Shown here piece after piece: positions 27,222 to 64,000 of a stretch of DNA of 64,000 bases (within the stretch, counting starts at the first letter, position 1; each line of letters opens with the position of its first letter). The translations under genes and the position numbers were made by a program. The stretch lies in the sequence record MN871451.1, one strand, 5' to 3'. The notes beneath the pieces were generated by a model, which did no database searches, was not told the origin of the DNA, and saw only the letters and a list, made by a program, of their open reading frames with translations.

Positions 27222-27265
27222 TTTGTTCCCTTAAAAGGTTAATCGTCTGTTAACAGGATTAGACA

Positions 27266-28897: not shown

Positions 28898-28912
28898 AGG
28901 AGTTTCTCTGCA

Positions 28913-43833: not shown

Positions 43834-43844
43834 TTTTACCTCAA

Positions 43845-48601: not shown

Positions 48602-50647
48602 TTAAGAAATCCAAACGTGTTCATTGGTGAAATATGCCGTTCCAACAAAACCGTTTAAGTACTCTTGAACTTTTGCCTTGACTGTACCGTTTGGCGCACG
48701 TAACCAGACCCACACGTTATTCCAATCGGTTGTCACCGCAGATACAGATTTGATTGACGATTGTATTACGTTCCCGGCAGAGTCGTAAAAATCCACTCGA
48801 AGTGCGACGTAACCAGCCGTCAACGAGGTAATTTTGATTTCGGCCTCCGCGTGGAAAATATCTCCGCCGCGCAGTGTCACGTCCTGCCAGTAAGAGACGT
48901 TACGTACGCTTCCTTGTGTAATTTTTCGTGAGTGCGGTGAATTAGGGTTAGAATAATTCGTAGTATCAATCGTATAAGTGAGGTCGGCGTTAGTGTAACT
49001 CGGTGTCCATGCGGCAGTTTGATACTGGTTGATCAGAATAACGTTAAGGGCACTACAAGGTCGCATGGGACGACTGGCGTTATCCATGTTTCCAGAGGTC
49101 ATTTTGTTCCTCACCCTTAAGGTCCCGATCAACTGGTAGTTATCCCCCTCTACACCTACGATCTCGGTAGTTCTCCTGACTCCCGTCATGTATTTACTGG
49201 TGTCAGTTCCATCAATATCGACGTGGGCACCGCCAGTGTTGGTAATGAAGACGAGGTAAGGGCGACCCGTACTATTTTCTACCGGAATACCGCTCCATGA
49301 GTTCGCGTTCGGTCCGCCTCCCATTGTCCCCCCTTTCATGATCAAATAGGGTTGGTTTTTGGTTGAGGTGTACGAAAGTCGAATATGAGGGTTGTTGTTA
49401 TTGTTTTCCAAGTGACAACCGTGGAGCTCGACGTTAGATTGATAAATATCAACTGAGATGTCGCAATAATCAAAACTGGTTCCAAAGAACCTGACATCGA
49501 TACTCGAGGCACTCCCTGATAAGTAGAGCCCGGTACCGTCGAAAGTAAAATTACAACAATCTGCAATCACGCCGCCGTAAATAGTCACGTTCTCATTGGA
49601 ATCAGTATTCGCATAAAAGGCCATCCCTCGGCGCCAACATTGTCCGATGATCGGACTGTATAAACGAATGAGGTAAGCACTCTTCCCGTTAAAACAAACT
49701 CCGTCCCTAAACCCAGAGACCTTAAGATTGTAGAAGGAAATATTGTGCGCATCGACACCAAATGACACGCCGTCTACGACACTGTTAGTGTCGGGTTGAT
49801 GAGTATTAATTAAGGTACGCTGAACGCGAATATTATCAAATTTCCCTGGATTAGCCGCAGGTGACAAATAGCCGCTGATTGTTAAGGTATAACCCGTCGT
49901 AACAGAGGGCAGCGACAAAAGTACTGCATTACGCATATCGATCACTAAATCGGTCGGGAAATTTACGGTACTGACCGCGTATACTTTCCCTAAACACGTT
50001 AGTGCAATGCCATTTTTGGCACAGTAGTTGACCGCTTTTTGAATATTACTAGTATCGTCCAGTACGCCGTCCCCGACTGCACCAAAGTCCTCAAAAGACA
50101 ACTGATCTGTAATAATCCGTTGCCAGTAGAATTCATTCCCGGCAGCAATCGTGCCGTTGTCATCCGCATTTACCCCTAAACGCGCAACGAAAATACCCCC
50201 ACCCGTAACCCCGTCTTTGTAGTAACTCTTCAGCGTGACACGCTGTCCTTGGTACCATGGTTTAAGCGTCCGTAATGCGTCGAAACTCTCTACTCCTTGT
50301 AACATGAATAAAGAGTTGACAATATGCGCATTCGTCGCGTAGCGAACTTGTGTCGTACTGTCTGACATTAATGCAGAGTAAGTCCCGTTCCCTTGGTTTA
50401 CATACCCCAAGACATAGTCTCGTGTACTGTTTTCGTAAACAAAGAAAACATTCCCCTCTGTAGTTACACTGAGCCCGGCAGCAATCGTGCTGTACGCGTT
50501 CTCAAAACCTAACGTTTCTCTGAGGGTACCAATACTAACTTTTTCGGATTCGTTTCCATTCGCTTCTGAGAGCGGAAGAAACGCATTCTCTGACGGATTA
50601 GAGCTGGGCGATAGTTCAGAAATTTTCAATGCAGTGATATCGGTCAT
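48602..50647 (-). CDS. Tailspike / depolymerase with KISEL anchor and C-terminal carbohydrate-binding-like domain
   Basis: Start at MTDITALKISEL (GGAG RBS); FEDFGAVGDGVLDDT--IQKA; beta-helix; C-terminal jelly-roll-like VDFYDSAG. Confidence 0.87.
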   Translation of the reverse strand: MTDITALKISELSPSSNPSENAFLPLSEANGNESEKVSIGTLRETLGFENAYSTIAAGLSVTTEGNVFFVYENSTRDYVLGYVNQGNGTYSALMSDSTTQVRYATNAHIVNSLFMLQGVESFDALRTLKPWYQGQRVTLKSYYKDGVTGGGIFVARLGVNADDNGTIAAGNEFYWQRIITDQLSFEDFGAVGDGVLDDTSNIQKAVNYCAKNGIALTCLGKVYAVSTVNFPTDLVIDMRNAVLLSLPSVTTGYTLTISGYLSPAANPGKFDNIRVQRTLINTHQPDTNSVVDGVSFGVDAHNISFYNLKVSGFRDGVCFNGKSAYLIRLYSPIIGQCWRRGMAFYANTDSNENVTIYGGVIADCCNFTFDGTGLYLSGSASSIDVRFFGTSFDYCDISVDIYQSNVELHGCHLENNNNNPHIRLSYTSTKNQPYLIMKGGTMGGGPNANSWSGIPVENSTGRPYLVFITNTGGAHVDIDGTDTSKYMTGVRRTTEIVGVEGDNYQLIGTLRVRNKMTSGNMDNASRPMRPCSALNVILINQYQTAAWTPSYTNADLTYTIDTTNYSNPNSPHSRKITQGSVRNVSYWQDVTLRGGDIFHAEAEIKITSLTAGYVALRVDFYDSAGNVIQSSIKSVSAVTTDWNNVWVWLRAPNGTVKAKVQEYLNGFVGTAYFTNEHVWIS

Positions 50648-50807: not shown

Positions 50808-53800
50808 ATGGCTGACATTTATGTTAAACTTTCTGAACTTTCTCGGCCGAGTACGCCAGTGAATGACTCAGATGTGGTGTTCATTTCCCAGTTAAACAAT
50901 ACAGAAAATACTTCTTCCGCAATGAGTATTTCTGATTTACGCAATTTACTCAATTTTGAAACAGCTTTTGATAGTACTGTCGCAGGGTTAAGTAATACAT
51001 CGGCGAATCAGATTTTCTTTGTTTACACCGATGACACCAAAACGAAAGTTCGTGCCTATGTAAACCGGTCAGGTATTGCAGAAGTCATGAATGATGCTGA
51101 CGGAAGTCCACTTTTATATCGCACGCGTAAAGGGTTAAATATTCTTGCCGGGAAAGATGAGTTAATCAATCCCGCGCAAGGGACCTCGCTGATAGCGATG
51201 GGTACAGGTGAGACAATAGCTGACGGTTTGGGCCATTGGCTCTCGGCGACAGTAGATATATTCAACATGACTGTTTCGCCTAATAAAATTAGCACTCGTG
51301 GATTTTATAAAGAAAAAGATGGCGGTGCTGGTGATTGGAACAAGACAGGCGTTGTCAATCTTTCATTGGCAGGAAAACACGTTATTACCGAGGGGAAGAT
51401 CTATAACAAACTCGGGGTAGAATATCTCATTGATATCTCTAAAGGAGAAATTGACCCTTTAGCGAATGGCGCGATGGCTACTACCTACGACGAAGTGTGG
51501 TCAACAAAAGAAAACGTTGTATGTCTCGGCGATGCCATTAACGGGATTTTCAAGCAAATCCCAATAGAAGTTTACACCTCCAATACCGCCGCCACTTATA
51601 CTGGATATAAAAGATTACGAATAACGTTTTCTCCAAATCTTTATCGTATTTGTAAAAACGCGGTAAAAGTAAGGAACGGTGTGACTTATGACATGCGAGG
51701 GTCAACAATCTATGTTGTTCCTACCCCGTCTAATAGTTATCCCGTCACTGGTAAAAAGCTTAATGGCTTCCAACATGGTTACGATGAAGTAAAAGAAAAA
51801 TTCGATGCTATTAATGGGGCGAATTATTGGGGTAGCGTGAGTTGCCAAAATGTCACTTTCTTGGGCGGCGATATACGCGGTGATTTGAATGTCAGTAAAA
51901 CTCCGGATCAATGTTCTTCGGGAGTTGGTATTTTAATCATTAACCCAGAATATGTTTTCCATGACGGCGTAGCCATTTCGATGTTCACCTGGTGTGCGGT
52001 AGCGATGGCAGGTACAACGACGCAGAGCCTTTTCAATGACGGCACTGACTTTGATGACAACGTCAAAGACTATCGTTACATTCTTGATTTCATGGGGACT
52101 TCTCGTTTCGGTAATTTCTACGGGGCTAACTATGAAAACTGTCGTTTCCATTCTGGTTGGCGTGGCGTATTAAGAAGTAGCGTCGATTGGTCATATTGGA
52201 AGGGCGGGATTTGTACAAGTAACATCCATTGGCAAAACCCAAGCTCAAATAAATCCGGTACTATCCCTTCTTACACAATGGTGGTAACTGGGACCGGATT
52301 TGATGCGAGTGGCGCTTATATATCCAATAACGGCGGGTTAGGCGTAGACTGTAACCCTTCGAAAGGGATTGTCTATACCACTGCAAAGGGACATAGCTTT
52401 ACTGGCCTTTATACAGAGTGGACTTATCGTAATTTCGTTATTTCTAAATTTGGATATAACGACGGTGTATGGAGCCGAAGCTGCTACCTTCACATTGGTG
52501 CTGTTTCACAGTATAAAAATGATAGCAAAAACTATTACATGTTGTCATTTGAAGATGGATCATTCGGCTATTACGACAGCGTTACCCAAAAATGGGTTTG
52601 GCCAAATGACTATACCCAAGTACCCACTGCGGTTGGTGTAAGAGGTATTCAGATCGGTACGCCTGTCCGTGACGAAGGGGCTTTTCTCCATGGTGGTTAC
52701 GACTTCAAATACGGGACGTATAACGTCGGAGGTGTTCTCGGGGAATTAGATTTTGACACCTTACGAGACATCAAGCAATCAAAAGAATTTCTCAACCCTT
52801 ACGGACTTTCTTTGAACAGCGGTGTCTGTTATCTACCGTTCAAAAACTTAGCGAAAGATAGTGTAGTTCATATCTGGCTTAAGGATCTTACCGGTAACTT
52901 CGATCCGAAAAAAATCTCTATTGGTCTAACGGGTAATATTGAAACAACCGTTACGAATAACAATGATTTCGTAGCCTATGGCGAAACGGTAGTCGATTTT
53001 AAAAACGGTTATAAACTAATTACCGTTTTTAACAAACGCCCATACGGTACCGATGGAGTTGGTACTTGGACACCGCAGGTTTCCGTTTATTTCCAGATTG
53101 ATCCGGCTACGCCAATCATCTTGAAGGCGGTAGAGGCTTATACCGGTGGCGTAAGTGTTTTCCCTGGCGGTTGTGACTATACCCCGCAAGCCGATATGTT
53201 CTCGATAATGTCCTCAAATACTTACTCGGGGGTAAACAACGGAACAGGTGGTGGTATTTTTAAACCTGGTGATATCGTCCGTCCTTTCATTCGCGTAGAT
53301 AAACACGGTAATGATTTTAAGTTTTCTCCAACTATTGACTCTAACTATAGCGCGTATGATAAAATCATTAAGAGCGGTATAACGTTAGATTCTGTTTTGA
53401 AGACAACGTTTACCGTACAAATTACATCTATCGATGTTGATAACAATCAGACACTGATCAAAGTACCTGATGCATCTGTTAAACTTGTCGTTATGGGTAT
53501 CCCACTTTATATTTCTTCGGGCTCTTCCACTTCCGTAACAGGTCAACAACGACTAGTTAGACGTTTACTCAATAACGACGGTACGTATAGCACTACCTAC
53601 GCGATCGATGGTATTGTAGGGAACGTTAATGATAACCTTGTTATCGATCAAAGACTACTCCCAAGTTACACGTTTTACCCATTCGAAAGTCTTTCGATTG
53701 GCGGGTCTTTATCGATGACAGCCGATAATTCGATGTTTTCTTTCAGTAACAATGGCGATTTGGGTTTCTTGAAAAAGAACGGTTCCCCTTCTAAATTAGC

Positions 53801-54155
53801 AATTGGTTCTGGGAATTCATTTAGTGTTTCGGCTTCGAACAAAACTACATTATCGGTATCTGATACTTTAACTGATATTTTTAAAGTGGCAGCTACTGGG
53901 ATCGTCACTGCTTATAACACGATTCTTCCCAGTGTAACAGGATCGTTTGATTTTGGTTCTTCTACTGCCGGTTTTCGTAACGCTTATTTTACAGGTGCGA
54001 TTACAATTAACGGTAACCCTGTCGGTGTAAAAGTTGATGTTCCAGCATCGATGACAGCAGCTGGTTCTGTTGGTCAATGGGCAGCCGATACTAGTTACTA
54101 CTATGTTTGTGTTGCGCCTAATGTATGGAGACGAGTGGCTTTGAGTACATGGTAA
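50808..54155 (+). CDS. Large tailspike / tail fibre (1115 aa) with KLSEL anchor
   Basis: Anchor, beta-helix-like middle, C-terminal PASMTAAGSVGQWAAD--Y-YVCVAPNVWRRVALSTW cap common in fibres. Confidence 0.8.
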   Translation: MADIYVKLSELSRPSTPVNDSDVVFISQLNNTENTSSAMSISDLRNLLNFETAFDSTVAGLSNTSANQIFFVYTDDTKTKVRAYVNRSGIAEVMNDADGSPLLYRTRKGLNILAGKDELINPAQGTSLIAMGTGETIADGLGHWLSATVDIFNMTVSPNKISTRGFYKEKDGGAGDWNKTGVVNLSLAGKHVITEGKIYNKLGVEYLIDISKGEIDPLANGAMATTYDEVWSTKENVVCLGDAINGIFKQIPIEVYTSNTAATYTGYKRLRITFSPNLYRICKNAVKVRNGVTYDMRGSTIYVVPTPSNSYPVTGKKLNGFQHGYDEVKEKFDAINGANYWGSVSCQNVTFLGGDIRGDLNVSKTPDQCSSGVGILIINPEYVFHDGVAISMFTWCAVAMAGTTTQSLFNDGTDFDDNVKDYRYILDFMGTSRFGNFYGANYENCRFHSGWRGVLRSSVDWSYWKGGICTSNIHWQNPSSNKSGTIPSYTMVVTGTGFDASGAYISNNGGLGVDCNPSKGIVYTTAKGHSFTGLYTEWTYRNFVISKFGYNDGVWSRSCYLHIGAVSQYKNDSKNYYMLSFEDGSFGYYDSVTQKWVWPNDYTQVPTAVGVRGIQIGTPVRDEGAFLHGGYDFKYGTYNVGGVLGELDFDTLRDIKQSKEFLNPYGLSLNSGVCYLPFKNLAKDSVVHIWLKDLTGNFDPKKISIGLTGNIETTVTNNNDFVAYGETVVDFKNGYKLITVFNKRPYGTDGVGTWTPQVSVYFQIDPATPIILKAVEAYTGGVSVFPGGCDYTPQADMFSIMSSNTYSGVNNGTGGGIFKPGDIVRPFIRVDKHGNDFKFSPTIDSNYSAYDKIIKSGITLDSVLKTTFTVQITSIDVDNNQTLIKVPDASVKLVVMGIPLYISSGSSTSVTGQQRLVRRLLNNDGTYSTTYAIDGIVGNVNDNLVIDQRLLPSYTFYPFESLSIGGSLSMTADNSMFSFSNNGDLGFLKKNGSPSKLAIGSGNSFSVSASNKTTLSVSDTLTDIFKVAATGIVTAYNTILPSVTGSFDFGSSTAGFRNAYFTGAITINGNPVGVKVDVPASMTAAGSVGQWAADTSYYYVCVAPNVWRRVALSTW

Positions 54156-54160
54156 TAAGT

Positions 54161-54200
54161 TGAGGGGGTCGTCAGACCCCCTCAGTTTTGTTTCGTATGA
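54161..54200 (+). promoter_or_regulatory. Hairpin plus TGTTTCGTATGA late-promoter module
   Basis: TGAGGGGGTC-gtca-GACCCCCTCA at 54161-54184; TGTTTCGTATGA at 54189-54200. Confidence 0.65.
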
Positions 54201-54225: not shown

Positions 54226-56193
54226 ATGCCTAAGTCTTCAGATTCTATCGGAATCAAAATTTCTGAACTCGGTGACGCAGGCGTCATCAAAGAAAATGAC
54301 GTTGTCCCGATTAACGCCAAAACCAGTGCGGGAGTTCCTTTCACTAAATCCACTAAAATTAACGACCTCCGTCAAACGCTAGGCTTCGATAATGCTTTCC
54401 TGTCTGTGGATGCGGGCCTGAACGGAACCACGTCAGGGGACGTATTTTTCGTCTATGAAAGCGCGGCGAAACTCTGGGTACTGCAATACCAAAATAATGA
54501 CGGAGTAGCTAACCCTATTCTGGGTTATGACAATGAACAAGTCAGGTTACCGACGAGCAGACAAATGAGAGCTGCAGCATCAGTTACAGAAAGTACCGGT
54601 ATGAGCATTATTCCCATGGGTGCTGGTTCCCTGAATGACATTTCTGGCCAAACGACCTTTGAAAGCAATGGGGCGAAGGGAGACGGTATAACGGATGATA
54701 CTGTTGCAGTACAAAAAACCTTAGAATTACTGAAGTTAGGTTATACTGTTCGTTCTAAAGAATCGAATGCTCGTTACCGAATCACTTCTCAAATTACCGT
54801 CTACGCAGCTTCCGGAAAATTGATCATGGACCGTTCAAGGTTTGTGGTAGATAGTTCATTAATGACTACCGGGTATGCTGTTCGGGTCGTAGGTGTCCCT
54901 GGCGCCACTTACAATTTAGGATCAGAGCTGGAAATTCGTTTACAAGGCCCTTACGGAGGACCTTCCGTTTCGAAACCACCTATAACACCTGTAGGGACAT
55001 TAGATGGTATTGGGTTCTTCCCCGATGGTACAAACACCCAAGTGTCCACGGTGTTAGCTAAAGTGTGGGTGGAAGGATTTCGTGACAACATTTATATCGG
55101 CTCGCAGTCGACGTACCTTCTGCAATTTATACAGCCGGTTGTGGGTAAGTTCTGGCGATATGGCTGGCATTTCAATTGCGTCAACGACGCAGGGGAAAAC
55201 ATTTCAATCTTCGGTGGCGTAACGTATAATGGATTAAACGCTAACGGGAACGCTGCGGGCGTATACGTTCCCAGTACCGGTCAGTATCTTGATGCGTATT
55301 TTTATTCGCACTCTTTTGACTATAGTGATCTTGTGTTTGATATCTCTACGGGAAATATTAATTTCATAGGGTGTCATTTCGAGAACAATTCCTCTAACCC
55401 GTACGGTAAGATGCTTTATACCTCTTCAAAAAGAAAACCGTTTGTCAATATCCAAAACACGTTTATTGACGGCGGAAATGACGTTGCCACCACGTATGCG
55501 AACCAAGGAACAACCGCAGGTAAACCTGTATGGTTCACTTTATCAGGTCCTTGTATTTTCCGACTAGTGGGATGTCCTGCTGGAAAATACAATAAGATGG
55601 CGGCCGTTGATGTTGTTAAATGTACAGGTAGCGGTGCCCTCGTCAAAGTTGTCGATAATTATTTTGATATCTACGGGAATAATGACATGGTAAATATCGG
55701 CGATTATACGAACCCGCTGAGAAATTATAATTATAATACCGCAGATTTGACAGGTTGGTCTACGATATATTCAGCAACGGGTACCGCTTTCCAACCTACG
55801 ATAACTTACGATAACTCAAAATCAATTGGTGCCTCTGCGAAAGTGCTTAGCACAACAACGACCGGGGCATTGACGACGTTATTTGGCCAACGTTTACGCT
55901 GCTCGCCAGGACAAACTCTTTATTTAGCTACCACGCTTTATTGGGAAAATATTGTTTCCACAAATGGCGGTTGTTATTTCGGTTATACATTTTACGACAT
56001 TGAAGGTGTAGAAATTACCCATAACGTAATTGGGACGAATCTTTCAGGGACGACAGGTAGTGCATCTAATGTTGTAAAATGCTCCGGATCGGTAATTGTT
56101 CCGCCTGGGGCAGCGACTGTTCACGTGGGTCTTCGTCATTATCAAACATCAGGTTCCGTTTACTTGGGCCCTGTCAAAGCATTCCTTCAATAA
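54226..56193 (+). CDS. Tailspike / depolymerase with KISEL anchor
   Basis: GAGG RBS before ATG 54226; FESNGAKGDGITDDT-AVQ; beta-helix with GEN...SFDY...HFE; CBM-like C-terminus. Confidence 0.87.
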   Translation: MPKSSDSIGIKISELGDAGVIKENDVVPINAKTSAGVPFTKSTKINDLRQTLGFDNAFLSVDAGLNGTTSGDVFFVYESAAKLWVLQYQNNDGVANPILGYDNEQVRLPTSRQMRAAASVTESTGMSIIPMGAGSLNDISGQTTFESNGAKGDGITDDTVAVQKTLELLKLGYTVRSKESNARYRITSQITVYAASGKLIMDRSRFVVDSSLMTTGYAVRVVGVPGATYNLGSELEIRLQGPYGGPSVSKPPITPVGTLDGIGFFPDGTNTQVSTVLAKVWVEGFRDNIYIGSQSTYLLQFIQPVVGKFWRYGWHFNCVNDAGENISIFGGVTYNGLNANGNAAGVYVPSTGQYLDAYFYSHSFDYSDLVFDISTGNINFIGCHFENNSSNPYGKMLYTSSKRKPFVNIQNTFIDGGNDVATTYANQGTTAGKPVWFTLSGPCIFRLVGCPAGKYNKMAAVDVVKCTGSGALVKVVDNYFDIYGNNDMVNIGDYTNPLRNYNYNTADLTGWSTIYSATGTAFQPTITYDNSKSIGASAKVLSTTTTGALTTLFGQRLRCSPGQTLYLATTLYWENIVSTNGGCYFGYTFYDIEGVEITHNVIGTNLSGTTGSASNVVKCSGSVIVPPGAATVHVGLRHYQTSGSVYLGPVKAFLQ

Positions 56194-56202
56194 AATAAAC
56201 TC

Positions 56203-56246
56203 TAGAGAGGGGCCTTTTGGCCCCTCTCTATTTGTTTTCCTATGAC
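56203..56246 (+). terminator. Hairpin plus TATGAC module
   Basis: TAGAGAGGGGCC-tttt-GGCCCCTCTCTA; TATG at 56241-56244. Confidence 0.68.
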
Positions 56247-56286: not shown

Positions 56287-59043
56287 ATGGCCAATAACAC
56301 AAGAAAAATTTCCGAACTTTCGAGTAAGGGTATTGTTCCAGAATCTGCTCTTTTGCCAGTGGCAGTAGCGGGAGCAGAAAAGGAAACATACCGTACCACG
56401 TTAAATAATCTTCGATCAAATCTTCTCTTTGAAAATGCTTACGAAACCCTCGCAGAAGGTATTGCGGCTACTGTCAAAGATGAAATTTTTTACGTCTATA
56501 CGGACGATAGCCAATTCTACGTCGCAGCGTTCACCAACGTTAACGGTGCTTCTGCCACGGCTGTCTATAAAGACAATACTCCGGTTATCTACGGCACCGG
56601 AAAAATGATGGCGGACGGTAAGTTCGGCTCCTACACGTCATATGTCAGTTACCTTTATAACAACGGTTCCGCTACCGGCGGCGAAACGGAAATCGCATTA
56701 CCTTTCGACTGCTTCGATGTCTCAGAGATGTTCTTGAATGGTAGTCATCAGTTCAAGGGGTTGAACTACACGTTTGATCGGTTATCGAACAAAGTCAAAT
56801 TAAAAGGGCCATTAACGGCGGGTGCTTTCGTTGTCTTCTACGTAAGACCTTACCCGGGTTCGCCTATCACGCCAGTAGAACCTGGTATTACCGACTACGT
56901 CAACGTAACGTGGCTATATAACGACGGCGCAGCAGTGGGTGGAGAAACGTCACTTACCCCTCCGTGGACATTCAAAACAGTCCCTGCTATTTACATCAAC
57001 GGCTCAAAACAAGTCCTGAATAAGCACTATGAAGTTGATAGCACCGGATTGAAGATTAACCTTTCGAAAGCGCTGAATGCTAACGACATCGTTGAAGTCT
57101 TACTGGGTGGTTCTCGGTCGGTCATCACCGCACAGGTATCGGGAACACCGGCAGAAATTCTTTTGACGCTGGGGCAAACGACAGGTGCGGCAAAAGTCAA
57201 TACCAGTTATGGTGTGAGCTTAGAGCAAGTCGTTCAAGGTGTTTACGGCGTGGAATCAGTGGATTCACTGCGGTCTCGTCAACCGGGATTTGAAGGGGAA
57301 CGTATTAAAGTAAAATCTTACGCAGTTGGTACTAAAATTGGCGGCGGGGAATTTATTGGTCACATCGGCGGAGGTGTAACAGAAGACTATGGTACAATCA
57401 TTGTCGGTGGGAATTTCTATTGGGAGCGTGTTATCCCCAATTCAGAAATTAATGTTTCATTTTGGGGCGCTCAACCAGGGACAGATATCACGGTACCTTT
57501 ACAACGTGCGATCGCATACGTCCAGAAATTAACAATAGGGACTAATTTTTACAGTCGTCCTTCGATCAGTATTTCAGCAGGGAGCTATCTGATATCTGCA
57601 ACAATTGTCGCACCGACATCAATCAGTATCGTTGCGAAAGGTAATGTTAACATTGTTGCATCGTCTAACTTTACAGGGTCGTACCTGATCAAGTTCCAAA
57701 ATACTGACGCCTTAACGAATGTCAATCTTTGGGAAGGTGAGAACCTTTCGGCTGATGGCGGTGTATTGCGACTGGATGGACAAGGCCGTGCTATAACTAC
57801 TCTTTCTGGAATATTTATCGGTAACGAAGCAGCTAGTATGTCCAACGCCAGAAACGTTTCATTCCGTAATGTCGTTGTGACCGAATGCTATCGTGCATTG
57901 ACGTTCTCTTCCATCGATACTTATCTATTCTCTGCGACTAAATGTCGTTTCGAACAAAACGGTATTAGTTTGAATGTTCCGTCTACAACGTCCAGTAACT
58001 CCGGCGAACGTATGTCGTTTACTAACTGTACATTTGGCGGTACCAACGAACATCACGTATACCTTGCAGCACCTGGTTTTGATGTTTCGTTCATGAACTG
58101 CAGTTTTGACTTTACTAACGGTAGTATATTAGTCATTACGGGATCGTCAGGTTATAATGCAGTTAAGTTTACTGACTGTCATGCCGAAGCTTGGAATGGG
58201 TACGTATTAGATGTAGTTGGCTCGCCGTCTAACTGTGCGGTATACTTTACCAATTGCGATTTCCTTCCTCGTTTGCGTTCTGGTCAGAAATCAGACTCTA
58301 CCTTAGGACTGGCCAACAGCCCATCTCGACCACTCTTTAACGGAAACCAGGTTGCAGTGTATTGGAATGGCTCTGAGATCAAACACGAAGTCAAACCATA
58401 TACCGAAGATCTCTATTTACACTCTTCCGGTAAACCCGTGGCAGTTAGTGGGTATGTAAAAGACCCCTACTATAACGTCCCGTCTGCAAACGCTATTATT
58501 AATAGCGGTTTTGATTTCAGTGCGGAAACTACTGGAACAACTGTCACGAGTACTTCCTCTACGTTAGCGAAATTTTCTGTTGGATACATCGCGGGTATGA
58601 CAGGGGTAATTGCCGACAGAACAGATGTTACAGGTAAAGTTCTTGCTTTAACGGGTACAAGTTCTGCGAGTAACGTGACTTTAGTTGGAACAGAATATTT
58701 TGCCTGTAAAGCAGGAGATGTGTTTGGGGTTGTTGCCGCAATGCAGCTACTGAACTCGACGGGGAATAACCGTATTACCCCATACGTTTATTTTTACAAT
58801 GATCAAAAAGTATTATTATCTGGCGGCCAAGTAGTTGGTAACAATACCGCGATGGGAAGTGTATTTTCCGACACTACCTTACCAAATTACTCCGCCGGTA
58901 CAACACGATTCATCGCTTCTAGTCCGGTGAAAATAAGAGCGCCTGTTGGCGCAGCGTTCGCTCGTGTTGCAGCGACTTTTTCTGACATTACAGGTACGGT
59001 AAACATATCCAGATTGTCACTATTCCGTTTTGAGACAGAGTAA
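56287..59043 (+). CDS. Tailspike with KISEL anchor, two tandem adaptor-like repeats and a beta-helix depolymerase domain
   Basis: Start at MANNTRKISEL (GAGG RBS); repeats YLYNNGSATGGETEI... and WLYNDGAAVGGETSL...; SGER...SFDF...HAE. Confidence 0.87.
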   Translation: MANNTRKISELSSKGIVPESALLPVAVAGAEKETYRTTLNNLRSNLLFENAYETLAEGIAATVKDEIFYVYTDDSQFYVAAFTNVNGASATAVYKDNTPVIYGTGKMMADGKFGSYTSYVSYLYNNGSATGGETEIALPFDCFDVSEMFLNGSHQFKGLNYTFDRLSNKVKLKGPLTAGAFVVFYVRPYPGSPITPVEPGITDYVNVTWLYNDGAAVGGETSLTPPWTFKTVPAIYINGSKQVLNKHYEVDSTGLKINLSKALNANDIVEVLLGGSRSVITAQVSGTPAEILLTLGQTTGAAKVNTSYGVSLEQVVQGVYGVESVDSLRSRQPGFEGERIKVKSYAVGTKIGGGEFIGHIGGGVTEDYGTIIVGGNFYWERVIPNSEINVSFWGAQPGTDITVPLQRAIAYVQKLTIGTNFYSRPSISISAGSYLISATIVAPTSISIVAKGNVNIVASSNFTGSYLIKFQNTDALTNVNLWEGENLSADGGVLRLDGQGRAITTLSGIFIGNEAASMSNARNVSFRNVVVTECYRALTFSSIDTYLFSATKCRFEQNGISLNVPSTTSSNSGERMSFTNCTFGGTNEHHVYLAAPGFDVSFMNCSFDFTNGSILVITGSSGYNAVKFTDCHAEAWNGYVLDVVGSPSNCAVYFTNCDFLPRLRSGQKSDSTLGLANSPSRPLFNGNQVAVYWNGSEIKHEVKPYTEDLYLHSSGKPVAVSGYVKDPYYNVPSANAIINSGFDFSAETTGTTVTSTSSTLAKFSVGYIAGMTGVIADRTDVTGKVLALTGTSSASNVTLVGTEYFACKAGDVFGVVAAMQLLNSTGNNRITPYVYFYNDQKVLLSGGQVVGNNTAMGSVFSDTTLPNYSAGTTRFIASSPVKIRAPVGAAFARVAATFSDITGTVNISRLSLFRFETE

Positions 59044-59081
59044 AAGGAGGAGGGGGTTCCCCTCCTTAAAAGGAAAAATAA

Positions 59082-61247
59082 ATGCAAACTAATTTTATTC
59101 AGCCAACCGGAAACACCTCTATACAGTCTAGTGCAGAGGTTCTTTCTCAATTATTGAACATCCCGCAATCGACCATTGGGTCAATTGAACGGGGCGTGGA
59201 TTTAACAAACCTTTCGTTTGCGGTTGACCCCGTGACTAAAGAGATTTACAACGTTACAGCTGTACTGGGTTCAGTAACGGGAATGGTAGCTTCAGGGACT
59301 ACCGCAGTAGTGAGCACAGAAAATGGAAGTTTCCCCGTTAATGCATTACCGGCACAATTAATTACAGTCAGTTTTCCGTCGATTACTGATTTAAAGAATT
59401 TCAATCCGTGGTTCGATAAACAGATCTTAAAGCTGATCAGCTATAACTTAAATGGTACTGTAGGCGGCGGGGAATTTTATTACGATGCCAGTGATACGAG
59501 CACTGCTGATGACGGTATGTTCACTATTGTAACTTCATCAGGAAAACGCCTCAAACGTCTTAATTCCGACAAGGTACTTAAAGTAGAGTGGGCGGGGGTA
59601 GAACCCGGCGGCGATATCAGCGCGGCGTGGCAAAAAGCCATAGACTTCTCTGCGGCTGTTGCTACGAAGTCGGGTAATTTTTATCAGTGTCCGTCAGTTG
59701 AGCTGCCCGGCGGTAAATATACCTTAACAAAAGGTGTTGTTTCCCCATCCTTCGTTAGGACTATTGTTAACGGGTCAATCTATATCGATTGTAAGGCCCT
59801 TAATGATACACACGTTGCTGCGTTTTGGATAAAAGGATTCAAAGGGAGTTATCAGCAACAAGGGATTGGTGGTTACACATTGTCCTCTAATGGTGGCGGT
59901 ATTTATTTTGAAGGACCAGGACGATCAACGGTTTCTTCCTTGGTCGGAATTAAAATTGGTAATACGGCCACCGAGAATAGTGGCAATGGATTTACTAACT
60001 GCCCGCCTAAAATCACTGGAGTAACGGTTAGACAGTTCCGCGCTGGTTTACAAATCACAGAATACGATGCGTATCTCATTAGCGTAGAGTATTGTGATTT
60101 TGGTAACTCTGGCTCAGCGGTTCAAATAGGTACAGGATCTAGAACGTCCCCTTGGAACGCCGGGGAACGAATTGCGTTTACTCACTGTACATTTTACGGT
60201 GGCGGAGAATATGGCTTTATTGAGGCCATTGTTGCTGGGTTCAATATTGATTTTACAAACGTAAGTTTCGATTATACTGCGACACACGTTTTCAATTTCG
60301 GAAGTAACGCTAACGGCAATAACTTCCGCGTGACTAACTCACACACTGAAGCAGTTGGGGGTTACATTGTGAACGACGTGGCTGGATTAAATGACAGTTA
60401 CGTTACATTCATTAACAGCGATTTCATGATGACACTTGCTAGTGGTTCACAAGTAGGTAACGATAGTAATGGAAACGCGGTATCTAACGCTATATCAAGA
60501 CCACTGTTCAATAACCAGTCGGTAAATATCTATCTTGATATTTCTGGCCCGAGCGCTGCAACGCAAACTCCTTACGATTATTATATTTTCCTTTGTACCC
60601 CAGCTTCCCGCGGCGTATCGGTAGGTAAATCGATTACTCCATATGCTAACCCACGCCCCTCTAAAATAAGCTCATTATTGAGCAAAGGTTGGAACTTCGG
60701 TAATGAAACCGATGGTACTGCTGTCACTCAAGGAAAAGTACTTACTGATTGGACATTCCGTTTAGTTAGCGGTGGGACAGCAGCAGTGGCGACGCTGAAT
60801 GCTAACGGGGATAAATGTGTTACACTTACACCGACAAACAATACATCGAACATGTATGCGTATTGGTCTAACAATGAATTAATCGAAGTATCGCAGTTAG
60901 AAAGCTATTCTACTACCTTTGCTGTCCAGTACGGTTCCGCTGATACTACTTTGACCGCAGGTAATCAACTAAGTTCAAACATTCGTTATACGTGGTACGA
61001 TAACACCCAAACTCAGATCTCAACAGAAACTTACAGCTATGATCTTTATTCGATAATTAAAGATACTGCTGCCCCGAACGCTGCATCGGCAACAACGAGA
61101 ATTGTTCCAATCATTCCTACAAGCCGTGTGGCTCCGCCAAGAGCAAAATTCTTGCGAGTCGAATACGGTATTGTCAGGGTTAATTATCCTTTAAAGATAT
61201 GCTACAATTTTATTTACAAAGGTAATAATGTAACTGCTACAGTATAA
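59082..61247 (+). CDS. Anchor-less tailspike / depolymerase
   Basis: AGGA RBS; N-terminal MQTNFIQPTGNTS in place of KISEL; linker GTVGGGEFYYD---DDG; AGER...SFDY...HTE. Confidence 0.85.
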   Translation: MQTNFIQPTGNTSIQSSAEVLSQLLNIPQSTIGSIERGVDLTNLSFAVDPVTKEIYNVTAVLGSVTGMVASGTTAVVSTENGSFPVNALPAQLITVSFPSITDLKNFNPWFDKQILKLISYNLNGTVGGGEFYYDASDTSTADDGMFTIVTSSGKRLKRLNSDKVLKVEWAGVEPGGDISAAWQKAIDFSAAVATKSGNFYQCPSVELPGGKYTLTKGVVSPSFVRTIVNGSIYIDCKALNDTHVAAFWIKGFKGSYQQQGIGGYTLSSNGGGIYFEGPGRSTVSSLVGIKIGNTATENSGNGFTNCPPKITGVTVRQFRAGLQITEYDAYLISVEYCDFGNSGSAVQIGTGSRTSPWNAGERIAFTHCTFYGGGEYGFIEAIVAGFNIDFTNVSFDYTATHVFNFGSNANGNNFRVTNSHTEAVGGYIVNDVAGLNDSYVTFINSDFMMTLASGSQVGNDSNGNAVSNAISRPLFNNQSVNIYLDISGPSAATQTPYDYYIFLCTPASRGVSVGKSITPYANPRPSKISSLLSKGWNFGNETDGTAVTQGKVLTDWTFRLVSGGTAAVATLNANGDKCVTLTPTNNTSNMYAYWSNNELIEVSQLESYSTTFAVQYGSADTTLTAGNQLSSNIRYTWYDNTQTQISTETYSYDLYSIIKDTAAPNAASATTRIVPIIPTSRVAPPRAKFLRVEYGIVRVNYPLKICYNFIYKGNNVTATV

Positions 61248-61250
61248 ATT

Positions 61251-61291
61251 AATTGAGAGAGGGAGTATCCCCTCTCTCAATTTTCTATGAC
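61251..61291 (+). terminator. Hairpin plus TATGAC module
   Basis: AATTGAGAGAGGG-agtatc-CCCTCTCTCAATT; TATG at 61286-61289. Confidence 0.68.
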
Positions 61292-61319
61292 TTCGTCTTA
61301 TTCACATAGAGGTGTAATG

Positions 61320-63305
61320 ATGTTAACTGATTTTAATAAACCGCGAGGGAGTAACGGTGAATATTCTCTTTTAACCGTGGGGTCCGTAACTGAGTTAAGG
61401 GCTTTAGAGCCTTGGTTTGACGGCCAACGTGTTCTATTAAAACGAGCGGTTGTGGGCGGACCTGACGTAAACGAAATAATGACGTACAGGGCCAGTTCAA
61501 CAGTCGCAGATAACGACTACAGTGTATTTAAAACAGCTAAAGGAGCTAACTGGCTCCTCGATACAACAAAACCTATTAACGTATGGATGGCTGGTTTTTC
61601 TGTCTCTTTAAATAACCTATCCCAGTGCATCAACAAAATAACCAGTGACATCGTCAAAATTGTTATCGGTAGAGGCTATATCGCAAATGGAACTTACCGT
61701 CTGCGCGTACCGCCATTAGATAACGCTACCGGCGAAACAGTTTATAAAATGACAGCGACAGTGCGTATCCCGCCGTTTGTTTCTGTTATTGTTGACACTA
61801 ACCAGACTTGGGATTTTAGTGCCTTTACTACCGGGAATGGCGTAGAAATAACCGGTGAGTTTACTGGACTTACTCGATCTGCAGCAAACCCCTTCACTAA
61901 TAACGCAGGGAGTTCTGCCAGCTACACTGAAGTACTGGACACTAATGCACTTTTCATTTTAGGTCCCGGGTACGACAAAACTACGTTCCATGGTATTTCT
62001 TTAGGAAATACAACATACCCATCTGGTGGTTTTGTCCATACTCGCGAAGTAAAAATCACTGGCGTAAAAGTTGCGCAATTTTATGGCGGAATCAGGATTG
62101 GTTCTACTGATACGTATTTAGATGTGGTGGAGAACTGCGCTTTTTATCGAAACGGATATGGTATCGTCACCGATGCAGGCGTGAACTGCGTTAACTCCGG
62201 TGAGAACATGCGCTTCGTCAACTGCCTCATTGGTGACAACTATTTGGGCGGAGTCTACCGAAACGATACTGTCCATATGTTTAAATATTTTGGTTGTAGT
62301 TTCGACTATAATACAAACGATGTTGTTTTTTATTCGCCAGTGAACATAGGTCAGGATACGTTGATCGAGTGTCACGTTGAAGGCTTCCGTTATTTAGCCA
62401 ATTGCCCAACTCGTACAACAGGCGCTGGCGAAAATAATTTTAAAATGATCGGCGGAAATATCTTCATGTACGCGTTTGTTAATGATCCTTACCGTGGAGT
62501 CAGGACAATTGGTTTTGCGACCACTACACGCACCGCTATCGACCTTGACAACGTAAACATTTTCTGTTACGGCCCGCACGTTAATAGCGCTTATGGGAGT
62601 TACAAGGCGTACGATCCCACTAACCAGATCAAAATAAGAATACGTTACCCTTTACGCGGACAAACCTATCGTTTTCTGCCATCTTACGATACCTCTGACG
62701 GTTACATTTTGAATAATACAGGGCTACTGTTTAATGGTACCGCTGGCGCGGCCTTACCGACTGCCAGGGCAATTGGACAGTGGTACGTAGTTGCTAACGG
62801 TTCAACTATCGTCTATGGCTCTGCAGCAGATGCAGATTCGGATGGCCTGATCCCAGTGACAATTACTGCTACAAGTACAACTAACTCGGTTAACCTTCTC
62901 TGGGGTACGCCAATTAATAACAGTAACAGTCAACAGAAATTTCATGTGTCCTGTTCAGTCAAAGCCGGTGCTGCAACTACTGGCAACGTTTACGTACGTG
63001 GTGTGTGTCGTTTAGTTTCATCTCAGACTTTTACTAATAACGCCACGACTAACGTAGTGTCAATGAGCGAAAATTATAGTGGATATGCCTTGGGTCCACA
63101 GCAAGATATTTTAAACTCACTAACAAAAACTGGCATCACCCTTACCGCAGACAATTACATGGGTACCTACATGCTTTCATGCGATACCGGTACGTCTCAG
63201 TACGGTTACGCTGGACTTAACTTTACCGGTTTCGTTGGTACCATCCAAGTTAAGCTGCCTGCGGTTTGGTTTTCCGATCAACATCCGACTTTAGGGTATT
63301 TGTGA
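61320..63305 (+). CDS. Anchor-less tailspike / exopolysaccharide depolymerase
   Basis: GAGGTG RBS; MLTDFNKPRGS N-terminus; SGEN...SFDY...HVE beta-helix motifs; CBM-like C-terminus. Confidence 0.83.
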   Translation: MLTDFNKPRGSNGEYSLLTVGSVTELRALEPWFDGQRVLLKRAVVGGPDVNEIMTYRASSTVADNDYSVFKTAKGANWLLDTTKPINVWMAGFSVSLNNLSQCINKITSDIVKIVIGRGYIANGTYRLRVPPLDNATGETVYKMTATVRIPPFVSVIVDTNQTWDFSAFTTGNGVEITGEFTGLTRSAANPFTNNAGSSASYTEVLDTNALFILGPGYDKTTFHGISLGNTTYPSGGFVHTREVKITGVKVAQFYGGIRIGSTDTYLDVVENCAFYRNGYGIVTDAGVNCVNSGENMRFVNCLIGDNYLGGVYRNDTVHMFKYFGCSFDYNTNDVVFYSPVNIGQDTLIECHVEGFRYLANCPTRTTGAGENNFKMIGGNIFMYAFVNDPYRGVRTIGFATTTRTAIDLDNVNIFCYGPHVNSAYGSYKAYDPTNQIKIRIRYPLRGQTYRFLPSYDTSDGYILNNTGLLFNGTAGAALPTARAIGQWYVVANGSTIVYGSAADADSDGLIPVTITATSTTNSVNLLWGTPINNSNSQQKFHVSCSVKAGAATTGNVYVRGVCRLVSSQTFTNNATTNVVSMSENYSGYALGPQQDILNSLTKTGITLTADNYMGTYMLSCDTGTSQYGYAGLNFTGFVGTIQVKLPAVWFSDQHPTLGYL

Positions 63306-63499
63306 TGATTTATATCTACAAAGATACTGTGCGAGAGAACGTTTATTTTCTTTCCAGAATTGATTTGGGGGAGGCTATCGTTTTCTTTGAAGAAGTAGAA
63401 AACTATCAGGAAGCCGCACTTGGGTTCTTATCGGAAAAGGGTCTGGATGGTTCTTTTCTTTTAGAAGACAGGACTAGCGAAGACGATTCCGGTAGTTGA
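63305..63499 (+). CDS. Small acidic protein coupled to the spike (possible chaperone)
   Basis: TGATG overlap with the spike stop; 64 aa. Confidence 0.5.
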   Translation: MIYIYKDTVRENVYFLSRIDLGEAIVFFEEVENYQEAALGFLSEKGLDGSFLLEDRTSEDDSGS

Positions 63500-63523
63500 A
63501 TTGTTTTATAGGTTGTTCATAGC

Positions 63524-63562
63524 GAGTAGGGCCGATCGGCCCTACTCTTGTGTTTTTATGAC
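63524..63562 (+). terminator. Perfect 24-bp palindrome plus TATGAC module
   Basis: GAGTAGGGCCGA/TCGGCCCTACTC at 63524-63547; TATG at 63557-63560. Confidence 0.68.
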
Positions 63563-63606
63563 GATCTAGATACCCTCTTATTTACCCAGACTATACAGGT
63601 ACCGAA

Positions 63607-64000
63607 ATGGATAAGTCTAGTTTAAAAATTACTGAATTACCGGCGTTGTCGGTAGCCTCTGAGAATGGGTTTATTCCCATTGCCCAAGTTAAAGAAGAAA
63701 ACGACACGTATAAAACAACACTCCGTGCGTTACGTGAAAGTATCATGTTTGAGAACGCCTACTCGAGTACTGCGGCGGGTGTTTCGGCAACGGTTCCTGG
63801 CGATGTGTTCTTTGTTTACACTGACGATACTAAAGAGCATGTTCAAGGCTGGGTTAACAGTGCCGGTGGCGCCACCCCGTTATTGAATGCTAATAGTGAA
63901 CAAATCACTTACGGTACTTACGCGCTGTTGAATAAAGCTCTGAAGAATAAAGGGGCGATTGTACAGTGGGTTTATAATGGCGGGTTAAGTAACGGCGGGG
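63607..64000 (+). CDS. Tail fibre/spike with KITEL anchor, partial; runs off the window end
   Basis: Not in the ORF track. Hand translation: MDKSSLKITELPALS...FENAYSSTAAG...FFVYTDDT...VQWVYNGGLSNGG. Confidence 0.82.
   Translation, partial: MDKSSLKITELPALSVASENGFIPIAQVKEENDTYKTTLRALRESIMFENAYSSTAAGVSATVPGDVFFVYTDDTKEHVQGWVNSAGGATPLLNANSEQITYGTYALLNKALKNKGAIVQWVYNGGLSNGG

Follow-up and report, generated by a model that had tools for sequence, protein, structure and literature searches.

Genome setting and gene starts

The locus studied here raises a simple question: how are spike proteins that lack an N-terminal anchor held on the virion, when they are encoded side by side with spikes that possess one? 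The window, that is, the whole stretch of DNA analysed (64 kb), corresponds, at 100% identity, to bases 124001-188000 of MN871451, an unannotated record named “Serratia phage KpYy_2_45” with K. pneumoniae as host. Towards its 3' end, it encodes two anchored spikes, hereafter hub 1 (starting at 56287) and hub 2 (63607), and two anchor-less ones, hereafter docked spike 1 (59082) and docked spike 2 (61320); these names anticipate the roles that we propose below.

In the backbone of MN871451, the RNA polymerase beta subunits are split and of the phiKZ type, and one tail protein, 2197 aa long, contains a transglycosylase domain. Over conserved parts, MN871451 is 86% identical to Klebsiella phage phiKp24, a Maaswegvirus also named vB_KpM_FBKp24, whose gp306, gp304, gp303, gp302 and gp301 are orthologous to, and gene-for-gene syntenic with, the MN871451 spike cluster. 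Judged by its sequence, the MN871451 phage is a jumbo phage of the phiKZ lineage and a near relative of the published phiKp24, which possesses a nucleus shell and a tubulin (10.1101/2021.03.02.433402). The 3' region of the window belongs to the receptor-binding (tail-spike) cluster of this phiKp24-type jumbo phage of Klebsiella.

Two elements lie between the spike genes or ahead of them (positions are those of the window):

56203-56246, + strand: terminator hairpin (56203-56230), T-run and TATGAC motif (56241-56246), 5' of hub 1
63305-63499, + strand: 64-aa acidic ORF, orthologue of phiKp24 gp302, with its ATG sharing 1 base with the docked spike 2 stop codon (TGATG)

The unit made of hairpin, T-run and TATGAC recurs at 61251-61291 and 63524-63562. 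The ATGs at 56242 and 61287 both lie within a TATGAC motif, 3' of a terminator hairpin, and the former was rejected as the start of hub 1 since it belongs to that motif. Shine-Dalgarno-like sequences are found ahead of 56287 and 61320, and the orthologues start at the corresponding positions; on these grounds, together with the TATGAC context of the upstream ATGs, the starts at 56287 and 61320 given in a preliminary description of this DNA are to be preferred to those of the longest ORFs. The 64-aa ORF at 63305 possibly encodes an assembly factor. A check of the spike cluster for DNA inversion switches gave no candidate, the repeats there being only anchor-coding or promoter/terminator sequences.

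Branching modules in the two hubs

56287-59043, + strand: hub 1, a 918-aa spike orthologous to phiKp24 gp306, in the order anchor, XD-a, XD-b, beta-helix depolymerase-like body
56287-56625, + strand: hub 1 anchor, about 113 aa, with a KISEL motif (phrog_27731), common to nine proteins of the genome
56629-56853, + strand: XD-a, first T4gp10-like branching module, positional orthologue of G7C gp66 XD-a
56887-57126, + strand: XD-b, second T4gp10-like branching module, positional orthologue of G7C gp66 XD-b
57253-59040, + strand: receptor-binding body of hub 1, a conserved N-cap followed by a right-handed beta-helix (Pfam Beta_helix at 57814-58257)
63607-64000, + strand: start of hub 2 (892 aa), orthologue of phiKp24 gp301; the gene ends at window-equivalent 66285

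The two tandem repeats of about 65 aa first noticed in the 56287 protein are indeed there, spanning residues 135-197 and 222-284 in the translated ORF (window 56644-56832 and 56905-57093); aligned without gaps, they are 37% identical over 63 aa (E 4e-12), with the paired motifs YLYNNGSATGGET / WLYNDGAAVGGET and FLNGSHQ / YINGSKQ. Across the 302-kb genome, the XD HMM detects exactly three copies, two of them in hub 1 and the third in hub 2. It also upholds the claim that the partial 63607 gene opens the same repeat module: the hub 2 anchor occupies 63607-63948, and a single XD, opening with VQWVYNGG, begins at 63943.

Pfam returned almost nothing on the spike proteins, the Beta_helix match in hub 1 being sub-threshold. 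A precomputed family, PF27114, came up in a word search. The 56287 protein matches Moo19 gp82 (9d80, 3.5e-29), B2 gp49 (9d83, 1.8e-28) and TSP4-N of phage CBA120 (7rfo, 6e-12), as well as CBA120 TSP2 (6w4q), the latter mainly through the beta-helix N-cap. An XD profile built from nine sequences, the 63607 module included, gave values of 5.5e-45, 9.2e-45, 1.4e-41 (TSP2) and 1.6e-30 across B2 gp49, Moo19 gp82, TSP4-N and TSP2. With tblastn, the XD pair reached G7C gp66 at 7e-31, and CBA120 orf213/TSP4 was matched too; module against module, the a-a comparison with the G7C gp66 pair scores 132 and the b-b comparison 179. The hub 1 fold model, which covers residues 1-320, agrees with these matches, its best PDB match in Foldseek being TSP4 1-335 (E 2.8e-9), and it superimposes on B2 gp49 with a TM of 0.94 and an rmsd of 1.0 over 68 columns. 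At E <= 1, the XD sequence profile did not reach T4 gp10; the link to gp10 therefore comes from the TSP4-N structure paper, according to which the TSP4 XD domains have the gp10 fold (PMC8825819), by way of the fold match to TSP4-N.

The N-termini of the hubs (300 aa) are 92-98% identical to those of phiKp24, and identity then drops to about 20-30% in the bodies, as it does for the hub 1 body compared with that of gp306.

Anchor-less spikes and their N-termini

59082-61247, + strand: docked spike 1, 721 aa, orthologue of phiKp24 gp304, without anchor or XD; its body is paralogous to the hub 1 body
59082-59378, + strand: head of docked spike 1, about 90-95 aa, starting MQTNFIQPTGN, homologous to the heads of CBA120 TSP3/TSP1 and G7C gp63.1
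61320-63305, + strand: docked spike 2, 661 aa, orthologue of phiKp24 gp303 with about 96% identity throughout, without anchor or XD
61320-61373, + strand: short docking peptide, conserved and starting MLTDFNKPRGS, of the type found in KP32gp38 and CBA120 TSP3, with the beta-helix N-cap directly after it

Both proteins had been described as anchor-less, with starts containing NFIQPTGN and DFNKPRGS; the two sequences are in place (MQTNFIQPTGN and MLTDFNKPRGS), and neither anchor nor XD was found in either protein. A third anchor-less spike, with a full head of about 90 aa, is encoded just past the window, at window-equivalent 66332. In the 302 kb, ORFs starting with the peptide motif number exactly three, each just 3' of an XD-bearing hub.

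The resemblance of these N-termini to those of kuttervirus tailspikes, pointed out in the preliminary description, withstood closer comparison. Single-sequence PDB searches with the 59082 and 61320 spikes gave no match, and only a profile of four anchor-less N-terminal sequences reached the CBA120 and G7C heads: TSP3 (6nw9, 1.3e-6), TSP1 (4oj5, 4.7e-6), G7C gp63.1 (4qnl, 7.9e-5) and B2 gp48 (9d84, 1.6e-3). In Smith-Waterman alignments with CBA120 TSP3, colinear from Met1, the 59082 head has a z of 9.8 and the 66332 head a z of 13. The peptide of docked spike 2, MLTDFNKPRGS, can be set beside MLDNFNQPKGS of KP32gp38 and MISQFNQPRGS of TSP3. Similarity to the CBA120 TSP and G7C gp66/gp63.1 modules, on which the original idea depended, thus exists for the XD (TSP4-N, TSP2 and G7C gp66) and for the heads (TSP3, TSP1 and gp63.1), and these scores identify the likeness to the Ackermannviridae/G7C spike modules as true homology.

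One has to consider that the anchor-less proteins might not belong to the virion at all, being soluble depolymerases freed at lysis. Some Klebsiella phages do have free depolymerases, and our literature search found no virion proteomics for the phiKp24-type group. A free enzyme has, however, no reason to keep a docking peptide, so that the conserved N-terminus counts against this reading: conservation is limited to the first 11-12 residues, the remainder being swapped, and between the 66332 spike and phiKp24 gp300, head residues 1-12 are 83% identical and residues 13-95 only 22%. Moreover, the homologous peptide of KP32 is required for virion incorporation, removal of the 29-aa conserved peptide or of the branching domain abolishing the incorporation of RBP2 (PMC13352976). 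We hold it to be extremely improbable that these spikes are free enzymes rather than virion parts.

The anchor and the mounting of spikes

In the preliminary description, “anchor” designated a single module. Such a module is present, but what was so named is really two separable modules, the anchor proper, carried by nine proteins genome-wide including both hubs, and the XD, carried by two. Outside this lineage, the anchor occurs only in the sister genus Moabitevirus. The anchor profile has no match in the PDB, neither TSP4 nor any other solved chain, and its fold model gave a best E of 0.37 in Foldseek and a best Z of 3.0 in VIA-align, which is noise level. As this monomer model is of moderate confidence (pLDDT about 85 at residues 50-110 and about 50 before), the absence of a structural match does not establish a new fold.

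Moabitevirus 2050HW has the anchor, with XD and heads both absent. Along with the phiKZ-like backbone and the confinement of the anchor to its lineage, this makes it reasonable to regard the branching modules as imported into a phiKZ-type tail, as had been suggested. It also bears on the idea that the anchor-less spikes attach to a baseplate protein or to an anchor-only spike, the XD modules being only spacers or trimerisation units. Spacer roles are thought to apply to XD1 of TSP4, gp10 and gp9 (PMC8825819), yet 2050HW keeps the anchor without either XD or heads, heads are always encoded directly 3' of XD-bearing genes, and all characterised systems with both module types show an XD bound by a head or peptide (PMC8825819, PMC13352976, PMC11654681): CBA120 TSP1 and TSP3 bind via their head domains, TSP1 to TSP4 XD3 (PMC8825819), and gp48 of B2 is purified in complex with gp49 (PMC11654681). 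XD modules acting purely as spacers are accordingly, in our opinion, very unlikely, and docking onto XD is the reading that we retain.

The numbers also invite a view of the whole spike set. Three XD docks and three dock-type N-termini (four in the relative MJ359) stand against nine anchored proteins; most spikes could then be mounted in parallel, by their anchors, on a repeated acceptor, with Ackermannviridae-type branching as a later add-on serving three extra positions only, a scheme to which we give slightly less than an even chance. As the acceptor, one may think of a baseplate protein with several sockets, or of anchors that bind one another in a chain. This parts list disagrees with the published picture of phiKp24, in which gp306 is the one primary fibre that carries everything (PMC9700779).

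A proposed branched complex and its wiring

We consider it likely that the region encodes a branched spike complex, with three kinds of N-terminal address module, XD hubs and docked spikes. Hub 1 and hub 2 would be trimeric spikes fixed to the virion by the lineage-specific anchor, and their XD modules, two in hub 1 and one in hub 2, would form T4gp10-like beta-jellyroll trimers offering lateral docking sites. Into these, the anchor-less spikes 59082, 61320 and 66332 would plug their N-termini, either as a full head of about 90 aa (59082 and 66332) or as the short conserved peptide only (61320), and the C-terminal beta-helix bodies would be interchangeable capsule-degrading parts. The original proposal that anchored spikes act as hubs for anchor-less ones is thereby supported, through the homology of XD and heads to known partner modules. 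Both the binding of heads or peptides to XD and the pairing of a given head with a given XD are what we infer from such homology. As to the pairing, the one XD of KP32gp37 has a peptide-only partner and gets its best score with the a-type, which leads us to guess, tentatively and with somewhat more doubt than belief, that XD-a receives the peptide-only spike and XD-b the head spike.

The hub/docked-spike layout is the same in five relatives (six genomes in all), and each of three distinct peptide flavours is kept at its own position across the six. A strict rule of one XD for one spike was rejected, given that in MJ359 the head-bearing spikes number four and the XD three, and that G7C gp66 has an XD pair for one known partner (PMC13352976).

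The same two cases lend some weight to a different wiring, in which adjacency and the 3:3 count would be misleading and either an XD would bind another XD, in a contact between hub 1 and hub 2, or heads would share or compete for one XD; in MJ359, the two spikes after hub 2 even have the same peptide flavour. Binding of TSP4 XD2 to TSP2 XD2 is documented in CBA120 (PMC8825819, PMC11414711), and since XD2 there binds an XD and not a head, a hub-hub contact could occupy one module here. Against this, all three XD of MN871451 score nearest the head-binding TSP4 XD3 and weakly against TSP4 XD2 and TSP2 XD2, the three conserved flavours in six genomes fit three separate sites, and hub 2 has its own anchor, so that an XD-XD contact is not needed for its mounting. 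We regard such a rewiring as unlikely.

Comparison with known systems

The hub idea is already published for phiKp24 and is not new: Ouyang et al. (2022), in their hyperbranched model, proposed that gp306 and gp301 act as docking hubs with T4gp10-like folds (PMC9700779). Like MN871451, phiKp24 has two XD in gp306, one in gp301 and the three docking N-termini. Between the two phages, identity is only about 20-30% in most receptor-binding bodies, and their capsule ranges should therefore differ. The phiKp24 fibres were grouped by N-terminal length, with gp300, gp303 and gp304 classed with the anchor-bearing gp307-310 (PMC9700779), whereas the module analysis splits docking-peptide spikes (3) from anchor-bearing spikes (9).

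With CBA120 TSP1-4 (Plattner 2019; Chao 2022, PMC8825819), the cluster shares XD beta-jellyroll modules in the hub and secondary spikes with TD1-type heads beginning M-x3-F-x-Q-P-x-G-S, both partners being significantly homologous. The MN871451 anchor is, however, unrelated to the TSP4 AD, a triple beta-helix; no XD1- or XD2-type module was detected in MN871451; its hubs are each anchored, while the second hub of CBA120 has no anchor and is mounted via XD2-XD2; and its backbone is phiKZ-like. By anchor, XD1/XD2 and backbone, this is not an Ackermannviridae (Kuttervirus) tailspike cluster.

G7C gp66/gp63.1 and gp49/gp48 of Shigella phage B2, the latter known as a purified and solved complex (PMC11654681; PDB 9d83/9d84; G7C 4qnl), have an orthologous XD-a/XD-b pair and a partner with the same head. 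These Schitoviridae differ in being podoviruses with one hub, one partner and another particle-binding N-terminus, and in having an esterase, not a beta-helix depolymerase, as partner enzyme. KP32 gp37 carries a single XD of the same family, and KP32 RBP2 resembles the 61320 spike in that its enzymatic domain comes almost straight after the MLDNFNQPKGS peptide, but KP32 is a podovirus with a T7 gp17-type anchor and only one branch.

Phages of this group, which are being considered for therapy, attack Klebsiella of many capsule types, and knowing which module belongs to which position makes rational spike swapping possible. An unannotated genome thus gains a parts list at the level of modules (anchor, XD, head, peptide), in a layout conserved in six genomes. 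With the principle already established in CBA120, G7C/B2 and KP32, and by prediction in phiKp24, the present finding confirms it and slightly sharpens it.

Phage Backbone and Gene Models

The window is a 100% match to bases 124001-188000 of MN871451.1 ("Serratia phage KpYy_2_45", 302,439 bp) and, over its conserved half, an 86% match to vB_KpM_FBKp24 (phiKp24, genus Maaswegvirus), a Klebsiella jumbo phage. The record is named as a Serratia phage, flagged UNVERIFIED_ORG and without annotation; its host entry is Klebsiella pneumoniae, and its nearest relatives are Klebsiella phages. The preliminary description spoke of a phiKZ-type tail, a fair wording since the backbone is phiKZ-like both in the window and in phiKp24, which encodes a nucleus-shell protein, a tubulin, a terminase of phiKZ type and a sheath domain with homology to phiKZ gp29 (10.1101/2021.03.02.433402; PMC9700779). 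In the window, two hallmarks of the phiKZ lineage lie just upstream of the spike cluster:

20628-27221 (-), 2197-aa tail protein with a transglycosylase domain
27266-28897 and 28913-33400 (+), split RNA polymerase beta-subunit genes (phrog_3148 and phrog_2986)

The genes discussed below, with their phiKp24 counterparts assigned by synteny, are:

56287, hub 1 (anchor, modules XD-a and XD-b, beta-helix body), gp306
59082, anchor-less spike with an N-terminal head, gp304
61320, anchor-less spike with a short N-terminal peptide, gp303
63305-63499 (+), 64-aa acidic ORF, gp302 orthologue
63607, hub 2 (anchor, one XD), gp301
Genome 190332-192155 (window-equivalent 66332-68155), head spike 66332

The longest ORFs begin at 56242 and 61287, each ATG being part of a TATGAC motif preceded by a strong terminator hairpin and a T-run. 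The starts proposed earlier, 56287 and 61320, are the correct ones: both have Shine-Dalgarno-like sequences ahead of them and correspond to the starts of the phiKp24 orthologues. Hub 2, read to its end from the genome sequence, is 892 aa long. The 61320 spike gene and the 64-aa ORF share a single base, the ATG of the ORF starting on the last base of the spike's stop codon (TGATG); the ORF product may be a spike assembly factor. The intergenic elements are:

56203-56246, 61251-61291 and 63524-63562, strong hairpin, T-run and TATGA(C) unit ahead of spike genes
54157-54188, further hairpin
59048-59066, hairpin alone, ahead of 59082

Because no hairpin, T-run and TATGA(C) unit is found ahead of 59082, this spike may be co-transcribed with hub 1.

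Branching Modules of the Hubs

The two tandem repeats noticed in hub 1 are real (37% identity to each other over 63 residues, gap-free, E 4e-12), and an HMM of the repeat finds exactly three copies genome-wide: these two and the one already suspected in the 63607 gene. Judged by sequence and by a predicted structure, they are branching modules of the XD (T4gp10-like) type known from multi-spike phages. Among solved chains, hub 1 matches Moo19 gp82 (9d80, E 3.5e-29), Shigella phage B2 gp49 (9d83/84, E 1.8e-28) and CBA120 TSP4 residues 1-335 (7rfo, E 6e-12). It also matches CBA120 tailspike TSP2 (6w4q, E 1.5e-16) and a KP32-type fibre (7xy1, E 8e-9), with top-scoring stretches that extend into, or fall within, the beta-helix N-cap beyond the repeats; the XD stretches alone in the 6w4q match are weak (E 0.0024 and 2.7). 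With a nine-sequence XD profile, the E-values for these solved chains improve to 5e-45 through 4e-22, and tblastn against 504 phage records finds the XD pair in G7C gp66 (7e-31, 86% of the query) and CBA120 orf213. An AlphaFold model of hub 1 residues 1-320 (mean pLDDT 67; 70-90 within its three domains) has its best PDB matches in TSP4 1-335 (Foldseek E 2.8e-9) and in B2 gp49 (TM 0.94 and rmsd 1.0 Å, with 38% identity across 68 columns).

The hub 1 modules score higher against their G7C gp66 counterparts in order (a-a 132, b-b 179) than crosswise (105-106), and XD-a and XD-b are positional orthologues of the two gp66 modules. For all three XD modules of the phage, the head-binding TSP4 XD3 gives the best or near-best score.

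Heads and Peptide of the Anchor-Less Spikes

As first described, the middle genes 59082 and 61320 are anchor-less: their products lack both the XD and the N-terminal domain found ahead of it in the hubs. The likeness of their N-termini to kuttervirus tailspikes is also borne out. The first ~90 residues of 59082, and likewise those of the 66332 spike (P0006) that follows hub 2, are colinear from Met1 with CBA120 TSP3 and TSP1 and with G7C gp63.1; in Smith-Waterman comparison with TSP3 the two heads give z-scores of 9.8 (59082) and 13 (66332), with 0/500 shuffles at the observed score. A four-sequence head profile matches TSP3 (6nw9/5w6f, E 1.3e-6, positions 1-89 on 1-88), TSP1 (4oj5, E 4.7e-6), G7C gp63.1 (4qnl, E 7.9e-5) and B2 gp48 (9d84, E 1.6e-3). 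The 61320 protein retains only the first ~18 residues (MLTDFNKPRGS...), leading directly into a conserved beta-helix N-cap, the same arrangement as in KP32gp38, where the peptide (MLDNFNQPKGS) also starts the protein. A six-frame search for ORFs starting with M-x3-[FLIVM]-x-[QK]-P-x-G-[SNT] returned exactly three, 59082, 61320 and 66332, each directly downstream of an XD-bearing hub.

The Anchor Module

The preliminary description treated anchor and repeats as one module; the anchor stands as a feature of the hubs, but it is a separate ~110-aa domain (KISEL motif, phrog_27731) present in nine of the phage's proteins; seven belong to the spike cluster and two are encoded elsewhere, one of the latter being only 215 aa. 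Those without XD are:

43845-45839 (-), 45916-48291 (-), 48602-50647 (-), 50808-54155 (+) and 54226-56193 (+), window
265426-267681 (-) and 275764-276408 (+), genome coordinates

The body of the 43845-45839 spike (residues 119-664) is homologous to that of the 66332 spike (25% identity, E 3e-34), one body type thus standing behind two different address modules. Two paralogues of 553-575 aa starting MNYYYID... (phrog_16942; window 42172-43848 (-), the gp313 orthologue, and genome 192165-193892) carry no anchor, XD or head.

The anchor is confined to two sets of phages, the phiKp24 group and the Moabitevirus-type jumbo phages of Serratia and Pectobacterium (2-7 copies each). It is present in Serratia phage 2050HW, where XD and head were not found at E <= 1 with queries that were both positive in the window's own genome; this supports the addition of the XD/head set onto a lineage-specific mounting system, the alternative being loss in the sister genus. 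Neither profile nor fold searches gave the anchor a solved-structure relative; given the only moderate confidence of the predicted model, this does not argue for a new fold.

Conservation across Relatives

The same layout is found in phiKp24, KpLz-2_45, KpZh_1, LPKP23 and MJ359: hub 1, head spike, peptide spike, then hub 2 and head spike, with the peptide flavour kept position by position. Address modules are kept while bodies are swapped, hub 1 and gp306 being 92-98% identical over 300 residues and about 20-30% thereafter. Between the 66332 spike and gp300, residues 1-12 are 83% identical and residues 13-95 only 22%; the hub 2 XD still shows 90%. The pattern suggests that the critical contact lies in the first dozen residues, as in KP32.

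In Klebsiella phage vB_kp_MJ359, hub 2 is followed by a pair of head-bearing spikes:

27236-29047 and 29071-31512, flavour MLN[RK]LVQP

It thus has four heads for three XDs, and the second of these spikes carries a partial second head repeat.

Comparison with Known Branched Spikes

Binding of heads and peptide to XD modules in this phage is predicted from systems in which homologous partners have been shown to bind. In CBA120, head domains mediate TSP1 and TSP3 binding, the partner of TSP1 being TSP4 XD3 (PMC8825819); in KP32, RBP2 incorporation is abolished by deletion of its 29-residue conserved peptide or of the RBP1 branching domain (PMC13352976); B2 gp48 and gp49 co-purify, and the structure of their complex is solved (PMC11654681). 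We infer a one-to-one map of XDs to spikes but do not take it as a rule, because MJ359 has a fourth head-bearing spike of hub 2 flavour, G7C has two XDs and one known partner, and CBA120 XD2 binds another XD. Tentatively, the peptide spike would dock on XD-a and the head spike on XD-b, for the one reason that the KP32gp37 XD is nearer the a-type (151 vs 86).

The fibres of phiKp24 have already been called hyperbranched, with docking folds of T4gp10-like type assigned to gp306 and gp301 and with reference to G7C and CBA120 (Ouyang et al. 2022, PMC9700779), and our addition is modest. Only three spikes of the lineage carry canonical docking N-termini, which are homologous to those of kuttervirus, G7C and KP32; because the remaining spikes have the hubs' own anchor, a single primary fibre bearing all others fits poorly. 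The sequence observation is confirmed and its interpretation as a probable branched spike complex supported by homology and the literature, which makes this genome a previously unannotated example of a known branched-spike arrangement.
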